Source: Caecitellus pseudoparvulus (Eukaryota; Protista; Bigyra: Bicosoecida). Taken from it: a DNA stretch of 64,000 bases. Each line of letters starts with the position of its first letter. Position 1 is the first letter of the stretch. The notes beneath the pieces are model-generated. The model was not told the origin of the DNA, made no database searches, and saw nothing but the letters and a program-made list of their open reading frames with translations. Shown here piece by piece: positions 35,465 through 40,207 of the stretch. The stretch covers positions 62,001-126,000 of the forward strand of contig CBFFRQ010000056.1 of assembly GCA_965644315.1 (NCBI GenBank), read 5' to 3'. The position numbers were made by a program, and so were the translations under genes.

Positions 35465-35668
35465 CAGTCATGACATGCAGGCACTTGCAACAGGTGTCAC
35501 CGCCGGCGGGGTCCCATGCCAAACCTGCCTGGCTCCTCAGAAACACAGAATCGAATGGGTGGCAAAATCCGGAAGTTGGGTGAATCAAGAGGGGCAAATG
35601 CACCACGGGCATTGTGCTGGTCTGCATCGCAGCCCCCCAATTGAGGTCCAGCTGCCCAACCCATCGCC

Positions 35669-37007
35669 ATGGCAGCTGAAGAATCGACACCAAAATCCGC
35701 AGGGGTGAGCCCGGCACAGATGCGCGAGTCGCGCTGCACAGCGCACGAGCTGCGCCCTGTCCACCTCTGCAGCACAAGGCCTACGATCCTACGAGTGATG
35801 GGCTGCCTGCGGACTTTGTGTTGACCAAATTCACAAAGGTGTGGGGCGTGGCGCACAGGCGTAGCAGCTGCTTCTGGCGTTTGATGAATTGACACCCGCC
35901 CCGCTGCAGCTGAAAGGATGAGGGTGCAAGGTCCCTCAGGACAAACTGTTAGGATATCTCAAGTCGATCGGAAACGAAATCAAGGTGGGTGCCTTGTCAC
36001 CAGCGGGCACACGCTTCGCGCAGCACACCACACCTGCCTGCCCTCACGCCCAGCCAAACCAAACCCCCGGCATGGACTGCAGCGTCGTGGAGTCCTCCAT
36101 ACCGGGCATCTTCCTCTGTTCAACCACGGACTTCTTCTACCCGCTGGTTGAGGACCCATACCTGCAAGGGCGCATCGGCGCCTGCAACGTCTTGTCGGAC
36201 TTGTACGCCATGGGCGTCGCAGACATTGACACCGTGCTCATGATCCTTGCCTCCTCCCTGGACATGACGGCTTCTGAGCGCGACATCGTCACGACGCGCA
36301 TCATCCAGGGCTTCAATGATACGTGCGCAGAAGCCGGCACAAATGTGACGGGGGGCCAAACTGTTCTCAACCCGTGGCCCATCATCGGCGGCACAGCGAG
36401 TTCCTTGCGGAAGGAGGACCAAATCATTCGCCCCCAGGGTGCAGTGCCAGGGGACGTGCTGGTGTTGACCAAGCCGCTGGGAACGCAGGTCGCAGTCAAC
36501 TTGCAGGAGTGGAGCAGGCTGCCTGAGAAATGGGCGCGGGTGGAGGCGGTGGTGACCCCAGCGCAAGCTGCGGCAGCGTTTGCCAAGGCGTGCGAGAGCA
36601 TGGCTCGCCTGAACAAGGCCGCAGCCACCCTCATGCACACGCATGGCGCCCACGCTGCGACGGACGTGACGGGATTTGGCATCCTGGGGCACGCCACGAA
36701 CCTGGCGGAGGCCCAGCGGGCTCGGGTGAAGCTGCAGCTGCACACGCTGCCCATCATCCAAGGCATGGCAGCAGTGGACGCAGCCCTGAGAGGTGGGGAC
36801 TACTTCAAGCTGTGCAAGGGCTTCAGTGCAGAGACCAGCGGCGGGCTGCTCATGGCAGTGCCGGCGAGTGCTGCCGAGGCGTTGGTGGCAGACCTGCGGG
36901 CGGCTGACGGGCAGCCGGCGTGGATCGTGGGGGCGGTGGAGGCCCTTTCTGAGGAGGAGGCGCCACATGCCTATCTTTCAGAGGACGTTCGCGTCTTGGA
37001 AGTGTAG
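35669..37007 (+). CDS. SEPHS2: Selenophosphate synthetase (SPS2 type, selenoprotein), 4 exons (35669-35704, 35773-35838, 35910-35984, 36054-37007)
   Basis: The spliced frame reads LTKFTK|LKG-TGA-GCKVPQ. Also TTDFFYPLVEDPYLQGRIGACNVLSDLYAMG, GGQTVLNPW, ATDVTGFGILGH, AETSGGLL. Confidence 0.96.
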
Positions 37008-37179
37008 GCAGAGGTGAGATGGATTGGCCGGGGCGGGCTGGCTACCCGCTCTGGCCCGAGTGACTTGAGATTTTCGGCAGTGCCTGACTGAGGGGCCGGC
37101 ACGGCAGTGCCTCGCGACCATCGCAAGTGGACGATGGATGGTGGTTGAGGCTTGAGACGCCCTTGGAGCGTCGTGGAAG

Positions 37180-37242
37180 TGGAGATAACGATTGTCCTGG
37201 CCGCCAGCACGAACCGTGCAGGCCAGAGCATGACCCCCTCCA
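37180..37242 (+). promoter_or_regulatory. Candidate type II SECIS element (non-canonical)
   Basis: Helix I TGGAG/CTCCA, core CGAT/TGAC (tandem G.A pairs), helix II TGTCCTGGCC/GGCCAGAGCA, bulge GCCA, mini-stem GCACG-AAC-CGTGC. It lies in the 3' UTR of a TGA-containing gene. Confidence 0.75.
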
Positions 37243-37458
37243 ACACACCTTCCTCGAATGCAACAAACGGCGCACCCAGATGCTTGAGACAATTTCAAGA
37301 CCACCCTCCTCACCTCCGGCGGTCGACACAGCTCCGAACAGCGCCCGCTTGTTGTGCTGGCCTCAGACAGCAGGTTGCGGAATTCGCACCTCCACGATCT
37401 CGCATCGGCGAAGAACCCCCCACTGCCCACCCGCCATCTCAGCACCGGCCGGAAAGCC

Positions 37459-39178
37459 ATGAGTGTTGCGAGCGAGCGTAGTCGGGGCTCGAAGCGCTCA
37501 GTTGGGCGGTATAGAACTGTCGCACGGGGGTCCCGAGTGGATTCCACGCTGTTTGGCGAGGTGAGCTTGCCCGCCGCGTGCAACTGAGCTGCCACCGCTT
37601 CCCACACGCGCCCCATACCCGCCCGTGCCCTCACAGAAGAATGCCGCTGCGAAGGAAGACCTCGCTTACAGACGCGCGCTGCTGCAGCGCACAGGGGGGC
37701 GTGCCATGGGCACAGGGTCAGCGCGGGGAGCCGCTGCGACAGGCGGCCGGCCTGGCGCAGGAGCGGCACAAGCTGCCGCAGCGCCAGTCGTCATCACCAG
37801 CGGGCAGCTGCAAACCATGCGTCGCCGTGCTGTGATTCACAGCGAAGAGGACACGCTGCGGCAGAAGCGCGCTGCCATGGACGCCAAGCGGTCCCGCGCT
37901 GCCGCTGCCGAGGCACGCAAGGAACGTATGCTGGCGCTGGAGGAGAAGCGGCGAGCCGCCATGCCCCTCACCAAGCTGCAGAAGGAGGAGCTGCAGTACC
38001 GCGACAGGGTCCGCGCCAACGCCCAGCAGCTGCAGGACGACGAACTGGACGAGGTGAAGCTTATGGCCTCCCATGCCGAGTACGCCAAGACTGCCATGAT
38101 CCGGGAGCGGCAACTGAAGGAGAAGGCGGAGCGGGCGGCCCTGGCCAAGCTGGCAGACCGCATCCAGGACCTGCAGAGCGAAGTGCACCGACTGGAGAGC
38201 CTGAAGGCGACGTACGACCGGGAGCAGGCCAGCATTCGGGGGCAGCGCAAGGCACGGGAGGTGATCCAGGAGCAGATGGCGGAACGGGAGGCGGCTCGCA
38301 AGGCCAAGCGGGCAGCTCGGGCGAAGGAGGAGCAGGAAATGGCTGCCTTGGTGGCATCCCAAGAGGCTGAGACGAAGGCCCTGCAGCAGGCCCGCATGGC
38401 CTCCAAGCGGGCGCTGAGGGAGGAGGTGCTGGCCGCCAATGAGGCTGCCGTGGCGGCGAAGAAGGCAGCCAAGGCGGCAGAGATCGAGCAAGACAAGGCC
38501 CTGTTCGAGTACCAGCGCGCCAAGGCGCTGGAGGAGGAGGAGGCAGAGGCTGCTGCGGAGCAGGCCAAGGCCCTGCGCGAGTTTAAGTTCGCCAAGATGC
38601 GCGCCGAGCAGAAGAAAGTGTCAGACAACCGGGGTGCTCTGGATGAGCTGCGTGCCAAGCGTGCTTTCGAAGCGGCTGAGCGCGCCCGGCGGGAGAAGGA
38701 GCAGGCTGAGGCGGAGCGCAAGGCGGCCGCCCTGGCCGAAATCAAGGCGGACTGCGAGCGGCAGCTGGCAGCCAAGCAGATGCGCCTGGCCATGGAGGTG
38801 CAGCGGGAGAAGGAGGAGTTCGAGGCCAACCAGCGCGTGCAGCGTGAGTATGTGGAGAAAGAGGAGGCGCAGTTGGCATCCCGGGCAGCCGCCAATGCCC
38901 GGCACCGGGAGCAGTTGGCGGGTATGGTGGAGTCCAAGCGTGCAGAGCGCAAGGCAGCCCGTGAACGGGAAGCAGCGGAGGGCAAGGACTTCATTCAGGC
39001 GCGGGATGCGCGGCTGAAGCGTGTGGCTGCCATCCGGGACGCCAAGGTCGCTGAGCTGCAGCAAATGGGCGTTGACTCCAAGTACACCTCCCAGCTCAAG
39101 CGTGTGGACCCCATGGCTGCCTTCTTGAAGGACTACAAAATGGGTCCTCAGCGGGGCACCAAGCTGCGTGGCTCATGA
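37459..39178 (+). CDS. CFAP45: Cilia- and flagella-associated protein 45, intron 37561-37636
   Basis: Exon 1 RYRTVARGSRVDSTLFG. DDELDEVKLM...YAKTAMIRERQLKEK, DELRAKRAFEAAER and a long trichohyalin-like coiled coil. Confidence 0.88.
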
Positions 39179-39207: not shown

Positions 39208-40207
39208 TCACGCGGGCGCGAGCGCCGGCATGCCAGCCTCAGCTGCAGCATGCACTGCTGCGGCCCCTGGCGTATCCCGGCGCACTTTCAGGATGAAGAG
39301 CACTTCATTGAAGGCGCGGCGCTTGGCCACCTGCACGGTGCAGAAGCCCAGCTTGGCCAGCTGCCTGGCGATGTCGGCGGGGTCGTTCTCCAGCACAGCC
39401 ACCATGTACATGGCGCCTGTCGGTGACAACAGTGAATGCAGCGTCGGAAGCACTTGGTCAATGACGACACGCCCTCTCTCTCCCCCCGCCCAGGCGGCCT
39501 CCACGCCTTGGCTGCCAACCTCCTCGTCAGGTGTGGGCACGTACGGCGGGTTGAACACCACCATGTCCACGCCCCCCTGTAGCGAGGGCCGAAGGCAGGA
39601 CCACTTGTCTCCATTCACGACATCCACACAGCGCGCGTTCGCGGCGGCAGTGCCCACTGTCGCGGCCGCTGCCGCGCCGTTCAGATCAATGGCCAGCACA
39701 GGCAGGCCGCTGAACTGCTCGCCTGCAGCGGCTGGGGCCGCGCCGCTGGGCAGGGTGACAGGGAAAGCAGCAGAGGAGCTACTTTGCTGTGGCAGTGAGG
39801 CGGGGCCGTCTGCAAACGCTTGCTCCAAAAGGCCTGACAGGAAAGTGGACACCACTCCAGAACCCGGCCTGCACAGGAATCAGCGCAACCCCTTCACGCA
39901 CAGTGTTGCGCAGTCGTGTGTGCCACCCACTCACCCTAACTCAACGCAACAGCATGGCTTCCATGCCTTCAACAACGCGAGTTCTCCTTGCAGAGCATCC
40001 AGCAACAGGTACGTGTCGTCGGCTGGCTCATAAAGCTCCTCAAAGTCCTGCGGAAATAGGTTCCCACAGCCGCAAACGAACGAATGTGCAAGCAAACCTT
40101 CCCTTGAGCATGAGCGAGTTGGGCACTCTAGATGTGTCGCTCACCTTGAATGTGAGGTGGTCCAGGCTCGGCACCTTCGCCTTCGCCGCGCTGGTTGATG
40201 CTGCCAT
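39208..40207 (-). CDS. N6AMT1: HemK2/Mtq2 eRF1 glutamine methyltransferase, 3 exons
   Basis: LYEPADDTYLLLDAL, ELG|AGSGVVS, VFNPPYVPT, AWAGGERGRVVID. Confidence 0.93.

Follow-up and report, generated by a model that had tools for sequence, protein, structure and literature searches.

Positions 37180–37242 of the window, the whole 64,000-nucleotide stretch of DNA analyzed here, very probably form the functional SECIS element of a Sec-containing selenophosphate synthetase (SPS) mRNA. The element is predicted from sequence and fold to be of type II, with a C at position 3 of the K-turn-like loop as the sole exception in its core, and in our reading this C is the rule in the organism and in the clade around it. 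A broader proposal concerns a whole clade of apparently non-photosynthetic marine flagellates, in which the SECIS K-turn would have changed its flipped-out base from U to C throughout the selenoproteome; the balance of evidence is favorable, and we lean toward it.

The SPS Gene and Its Sec Codon

The window is GC-rich eukaryotic DNA (~63% G+C) and belongs to a genome of 30.6 Mb in 215 contigs. The gene located 5′ of the hairpin encodes a selenophosphate synthetase of the SelD/SPS2 type, and the homologues of its last exon are selenide, water dikinases with the domains PF00586 and PF02769. The introns at 35704–35771, 35837–35907, and 35983–36051 all have GT..AG borders and are absent from RNA contigs that span them. 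Translation across the junctions gives FTKLKG-U-GCKVPQDKLLGYLKSIGNEIKPNQTPGMDCSVVE and places the in-frame TGA at the catalytic Sec/Cys site (G-U-GCKVPQ). Since this TGA is in frame on spliced RNA, SPS needs a SECIS element. The exons in this part of the gene (35704–36051) are very short, 65–90 nt, and are separated by introns of 68–71 nt; the gene after SPS has a 76-nt intron at 37559–37634.

The closest named relatives of the protein are from stramenopiles and share ~60–66% identity with it. The two nearest relatives, L015 and L016 (67% identity), are both Sec proteins with the same G-U-GCKVPQ site. A metagenome search for close SPS relatives yielded matches at 47–55% identity only.

Anatomy of the Hairpin and Its Place in the Transcript

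The hairpin begins 172 nt past the SPS stop codon, and its parts are listed in Table 1. Its minimum free energy (MFE) fold has an energy of −28.6 kcal/mol and a z-score of −2.85, and 1 of 200 shuffled sequences folded equally well. In the core, A37188 takes the place of K-turn loop position 2 and C37189 that of position 3, which is a U in canonical SECIS elements. Two tandem sheared pairs, G37190.A37233 and A37191.G37232, are predicted from sequence and fold, and this xGA/GA tandem is flanked by an internal loop and a 5-bp helix I, as is characteristic of SECIS elements. Helix II has 10 positions with 9 pairs and a single C.A mismatch at 37196/37227. The A that precedes the core triplet is invariant across the structural alignment of seven SECIS elements described below (A7), and every member of A7 has a U.U, C.C, or C.U apposition atop the G.A tandem. 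Leaving aside the apical bulge, which is treated below, the predicted hairpin is SECIS-like in each feature tested except for one SECIS-defining feature, the UGA, in which the first base of the core triplet is C37189 and not U.

Table 1. Features of the SPS gene and of the predicted SECIS element in its 3′ UTR (coordinates of the window).
Feature	Position	Strand	Basis and remarks
SPS exon with Sec codon	35908–35982	+	TGA 35919–35921, TKLKG-U-GCKVPQDKLLGYLKSIGNEIK; translation, flanking introns skipped in RNA contigs
Last SPS exon (AIRS and AIRS_C domains)	36052–37007	+	ORF list; stop TAG 37005–37007; splice junction in RNA contigs
Helix I, 5′ strand, UGGAG	37180–37184	+	MFE fold; pairs with 37238–37242
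5′ core, ACGA	37188–37191	+	Sequence; position invariant in seven aligned SECIS elements; C also in RNA contig
U facing U37231, non-Watson–Crick pyrimidine–pyrimidine pair atop tandem G.A	37192	+	Alignment A7
Helix II, 5′ strand	37193–37202	+	MFE fold, covariation; pairs with 37221–37230
Apical 5′ bulge GCCA, at the site of the AA(R) motif	37203–37206	+	Structural alignment A7; genome consensus GCAA
Mini-stem GCACG/CGUGC with loop AAC	37207–37219	+	MFE fold; 5 bp, 37207–37211 with 37215–37219; type II feature
Helix II, 3′ strand	37221–37230	+	MFE fold, covariation
3′ core, UGA	37231–37233	+	Sequence, A7; U37231 faces U37192, G37232 and A37233 in predicted sheared pairs
Helix I, 3′ strand, CUCCA	37238–37242	+	MFE fold
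AATGCA, probable poly(A) signal	37257–37262	+	15 nt 3′ of the hairpin; recurrence in selenoprotein UTRs

An earlier reading made from the sequence only had described a hairpin of full type II geometry followed by AATGCA, with no canonical AUGA-AA-GA element in the SPS UTR. The MFE fold and the sequence agree with the first part of this description, and a scan of the UTR agrees with the second: no canonical element is present there. A helix II closed by an xGA...GA pair occurs nowhere else in 37008–37700, which leaves this hairpin as the single candidate between the SPS stop and the next gene.

AATGCA is probably the poly(A) signal of the clade, judging from its recurrence, and the SPS hairpin would then lie in the transcript, 5′ of the signal, which speaks against a location beyond the poly(A) site. 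The hexamer is found 15–100 nt 3′ of the SECIS element in eight of nine selenoprotein UTRs, both relatives included, while its background in the window is ~0.15 per kb per strand. Neither TGTAA nor AATAAA is present in the SPS UTR. A literature search on AATGCA as a poly(A) signal returned nothing relevant. Sites of AATGCA include 35597–35602 and 39435–39440 in the window in addition to the one in Table 1, as well as L001:2113–2118, L049:1734–1739, and L050:1055–1060, and both genes neighboring SPS also have the hexamer past their stops.

ACGA Elements behind Other Sec Genes

Selenoprotein genes were located by Pfam searches of the genome, and their 3′ UTRs were then read. A predicted ACGA SECIS element was found behind every Sec gene examined in the genome, which amounts to 8 distinct genes in 10 copies. 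Besides SPS, the genes are SelK, SelT, SelS, SelW, two copies of MsrA, and two copies of a small membrane protein, and all of the elements are of type II with ACGA on the 5′ side and YGA on the 3′ side. SelK, which ends in GGG-U-G, has ACGAU...UGA 93 nt past its stop. In SelT (U-GYRNEF) the hairpin is ~40 nt past the stop, and SelS, which ends in GG-U-G, and each of the two Sec-MsrA copies have theirs in the 3′ UTR. SelW (CGR-U-GY) was discovered by the covariance model R2 although SelW was absent from the training set, with a score of 40.5 bits and a genome-wide E-value of 2.7e-6. The small membrane protein ends in PPRA-U-GRGPC, and its hairpin is 74 nt past the stop; the two copies score 29.0 and 23.1 bits with model R3, which was trained on neither. 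Among the Cys homologues, namely a Cys-MsrA on contig C18 and two Cys-GPx genes, none of the three has such a hairpin.

The two small membrane protein copies, L051:1370–1521 on contig C13 and L052:1370–1521 on contig C117 (both on the minus strand), are near-identical, and each has an ACGA element with the bulge GCAG. A single base distinguishes their helices II, giving a U-A pair in one and a C.A mismatch in the other. The MsrA gene is duplicated on contigs C10 and C5. These duplicates may be haplotigs or recent duplications.

The Apical Bulge

The bulge at the site of the AA(R) motif varies among the elements of the genome. It is GCAA in SelT, SelW, and the two MsrA copies, ACAA in SelS, UAAG in SelK, and GCAG in the small membrane protein. 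In SPS it is GCCA, a single A-to-C change from the genome consensus GCAA, and starts 12 nt past A37191. The sequence-only reading had called the SPS element doubly non-canonical, with CC in place of AA. There is indeed no AA in the bulge, and in the register of SelK (UAAG) the CC holds, at +13/+14; when compared with the consensus GCAA, however, the bulge reads CA, and one A is kept. Nor is AA obligatory here, as the GCAG of the small membrane selenoprotein shows. Published SECIS search patterns accept CC variants as well (PMC2375036, PMC3753652). GCCA is probably a permitted form of an A-containing motif whose conservation is loose.

The bulge could also be taken as the mark of a decayed or weak SECIS element, which would lead mostly to truncated SPS, or to inefficient recoding that would serve as a brake responsive to selenium. 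Autoregulation of selenium use has been proposed for SPS2 in other organisms, which would fit such a brake, and the SPS element is one of two distinct SECIS elements of the genome without AA. On the other hand, the core, helices, and spacing of the SPS element are intact and its score is like those of the other elements, a second Sec gene has the bulge GCAG, and SPS is indispensable to all other selenoproteins. Natural CC variants also work in mammals (PMC3753652, PMC2375036). We therefore regard a weakened element as unlikely, and a functional SECIS element as the better description of the SPS hairpin.

Alignment, Covariation, and Specificity

No usable alignment of the SECIS elements was obtained with MAFFT. 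A model built on a single sequence, R1, is weak (true elements score 10–17 bits) and has been used only for the structural alignments behind the models R2 and R3. In the structural alignment A7, the fixed columns are [A/C]-A-C-G-A-[U/C] and Y-G-A, and the helices are almost without shared sequence. Of the cells in paired columns, 93.2% are paired in A7, compared with 57% in shuffles, and none of 500 shuffles scored as high. Fitting to the model favors pairing in A7, but slid controls gave 34–54%, and the pairing is thus unlikely to be an artifact. Compensatory change on both sides was observed in 14 of 15 pairs (9 of 10 in helix II and all 5 in the mini-stem).

The SPS element scores 55 bits with both R2 and R3, scores that are not independent because SPS is among the training sequences of the two models. 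Scans of the whole genome with R2 and R3, in which 150 of ~20,000 first-look candidates were scored, returned the training set and SelW; because of this sampling, the statement that all SECIS elements are ACGA applies to the genes looked up. In 134 kb (the 64-kb window and 70 kb of another contig), R3 found nothing else above 11 bits, and on the 68.8 kb of contig C28 that were scanned it is the SelK element alone that was found. The sequence-only reading had suggested a covariance model built from relatives and scanned across other selenoprotein UTRs; with the models built here, the elements of SelW (R2), of the membrane protein, and of SelT in two relatives (both R3) were detected without training on them.

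A strict descriptor was also applied to both strands, consisting of the core, a helix II in which 9 or more of 10 positions are paired, a 3–5-nt bulge, the mini-stem, and NGA. In 178.6 kb it has 5 matches, all with ACGA and all 3′ of Sec genes, and zero matches with AUGA, AGGA, AAGA, or other cores. In Markov-simulated sequence, the same descriptor gives 0.07 ACGA matches and 0.9 matches with any NNGA core.

The Rfam SECIS models show no match at the gathering threshold in the window, at E ≤ 10 in the SPS UTR, or at E ≤ 10 in the genome (RF00031), and the Rfam thresholds are reached by none of the ACGA hairpins. The silence of SECIS_1 says little, because SECIS candidates from related protists escape this model as well. 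A weak Metazoa_SRP match at 37502–37695 on the minus strand, which overlaps the start of the next gene, is most likely due to chance (17.7 bits, compared with a gathering threshold of 70).

The lack of Rfam matches, together with the fact that the SECIS function of the hairpins is a prediction, would suit an explanation in which the ACGA hairpins serve some general purpose in 3′ UTRs, such as stability or 3′ end formation, and have nothing to do with Sec, the true SECIS being elsewhere or of an unrecognized kind. This explanation is very improbable in view of the distribution of the hairpin, which stands behind every Sec gene examined, behind 0 of 3 Cys homologues, and nowhere else in 134–178 kb. 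It also has to contend with a SECIS anatomy in every part but one base, and the failure of SECIS_1 on the candidates of the relatives takes weight from the Rfam result.

RNA Evidence for C37189

The poly(A) metatranscriptome contig X17 (36987–37201) differs from the DNA solely at 37146 and reads C at 37189; a second RNA contig, X18, also spans 37189. RNA contigs from four runs cover the SPS UTR to 37184 or 37201 at a depth of ~2–7, and the next contig starts at 37305. The RNA evidence therefore extends over the 5′ half of the hairpin, and contigs are not informative on transcript ends. The C in the RNA contig indicates that C37189 is no assembly error, and the ACGA core given in the sequence-only reading, which had named a sequencing error at this base as a possible flaw, stands. 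C-to-U editing of C37189 in the mRNA, which would restore a canonical AUGA and fit the known U requirement of SBP2 (PMC1874613), is hardly credible, since the C in X17, with X18 spanning the same base, argues against it, even if contigs do drop minority variants. At 37146, in the SPS 3′ UTR and 5′ of the SECIS element, the assembly has T and the contigs of all four RNA runs have C, which is a population or strain difference.

Relatives and Host

In the protein collection, SelT has its two closest matches, at 65% and 48% identity, in proteins encoded on contigs of other assemblies, and both have an in-frame TGA. Their contigs, L049 from the ENA record ERZ21854002 and L050 from the ENA record ERZ23491292, carry an ACGA hairpin ~40 nt past the stop. 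These hairpins, L049:1575–1634 and L050:929–990, score 29.1 and 21.8 bits with R3 although they had no part in its training, and their helix II sequences are unlike those of the source genome.

The best hairpins of the two nearest SPS relatives, L015:2610–2681 and L016:2332–2381, have the form UUGAC...AA...GA, in which U, not A, precedes UGA. We tentatively regard them as SECIS elements, the predictions being weak; if this is right, the ancestral U has been kept outside the ACGA clade. For four further SPS relatives, the UTRs are truncated or uninformative on their contigs.

Near-identical sequence is present in marine metagenomes and metatranscriptomes. A six-frame search of the genome for the light-harvesting protein domain PF00504 gave no match, which suggests a heterotroph. 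The nearest relatives of the ribosomal protein eL8 share 79–88% identity; the eL8 of the genome, L028 (C18:406880–410110), is in the same 90% cluster as a protein assigned to Symbiodinium sp. KB8. Runs labeled as seven different organisms also contain near-identical DNA. It may be that the organism is a frequent contaminant of co-cultures.

The Binding Protein and a Proposed Mechanism

In the K-turn-like loop, position 3 is taken by the U of AUGA, the base that is held in the pocket of L7Ae-type proteins (PMC1874613); in other K-turns, the nucleotide at this position flips into that pocket. SBP2 prefers A at position 2 and needs a non-Watson–Crick U.U or U.C pair atop the G.A tandem, followed by Watson–Crick pairs (PMC1874613). 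The SPS hairpin offers all of these in A37188, U37192.U37231, and helix II, and position 3 alone differs. In the SECIS element of human SEPN1 (SelN), a U-to-C mutation at position 3 abolishes SBP2 binding and causes rigid spine muscular dystrophy (PMC1874613). A U-to-G change is reported to cut Sec incorporation by 88%, and L30 to prefer C or A at position 3 (PMC1874613).

Because the human U-to-C change abolishes SBP2 binding, an element with C at position 3 would need an altered binding protein in order to function. We propose that the SECIS-binding protein of the clade, SBP2 or a substitute, has a pocket that accepts C, and that this protein would recruit eEFSec and Sec-tRNA and so recode the UGA of the SPS mRNA. 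A six-frame search of the genome with PF01248 matched eL8, eL30, Snu13, Nhp2, and eS12 only, and SBP2 was not found among the matches. With exons as short as the 65–90 nt that occur in this genome, the pieces of an SBP2 gene could be too small for a six-frame search to pick up.

If the selenoproteome of the clade has indeed switched to C, its SECIS-binding protein has changed in specificity or been replaced. Candidates would be an SBP2 whose pocket is altered at the residues equivalent to human E699 and R730, or a binder similar to L30. This would be a case of RNA–protein co-evolution, and the selenoproteomes of the clade would be invisible to UGA-based SECIS tools. A lineage that naturally uses C would also imply that the U requirement belongs to the partner protein and not to the RNA fold. 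The ACGA lineage would in this way offer an RNA/protein specificity pair with which orthogonal Sec insertion could be studied and perhaps engineered. On the practical side, surveys that confirm genes by a UGA-type SECIS element may overlook the Sec genes of the clade, at least eight of which are without an AUGA-type element here.

Comparison with Known SECIS Elements

The literature search, which covered part of the whole literature, found no description of an ACGA SECIS element or of a C at position 3. With canonical type II elements (AUGA...AA...GA), the SPS hairpin shares the location in the 3′ UTR of a Sec-UGA gene, helix I, the internal loop, the tandem G.A/A.G with a pyrimidine mismatch atop it, a helix II of ~10 bp, the unpaired apical bulge, the mini-stem, and the A before the core triplet. 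It differs from them in having C for the near-invariant U and GCCA for AA(R), and also in its detection, as it is below all Rfam thresholds and does not fit the NTGA that SECISearch patterns require (PMC2375036). The surmise of the sequence-only reading that a lineage-specific SECIS is being missed by standard searches is supported by this analysis, since ACGA is found in all Sec genes examined and in SelT of two relatives and in none of the Cys homologues.

The human SEPN1 mutant has the core itself in common, as the same AUGA-to-ACGA change occurs at the same position (PMC1874613). In humans, however, the change abolishes SBP2 binding and means disease, whereas here it is the conserved wild type, shared by every Sec gene examined and by two relatives. 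In the CC-type motif of mammalian SelM and SelO, AA is likewise replaced by unpaired bases that include C; the SPS element differs in that GCCA keeps one A and stands above an ACGA core, and in that the same genome also has GCAG.

The GGGA-type SECIS elements of Toxoplasma and Neospora carry G where the core triplet otherwise has U, a feature known from some of the organism's genes only. They are similar to the present elements as a lineage-restricted replacement of the U of the core triplet, and different in that G is found in some genes there and C in every Sec gene examined here. The comparison with apicomplexan GGA cores, already drawn from the sequence, is thus apt as an analogy, and it goes no further than that. 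Lineage-specific characteristics have been described for the SECIS elements of Toxoplasma (PMC3753652), and lineage flavors are also known from Ostreococcus, with G before the core, and from Dictyostelium, with UGUA-AUGA-UU (PMC2375036). As in these organisms, the core sequence is convergently uniform within one genome ([A/C]ACGA[U/C] here). In Ostreococcus and Dictyostelium, however, UGA is kept and the base before it has changed, whereas in the genome described here it is the UGA itself that has changed.
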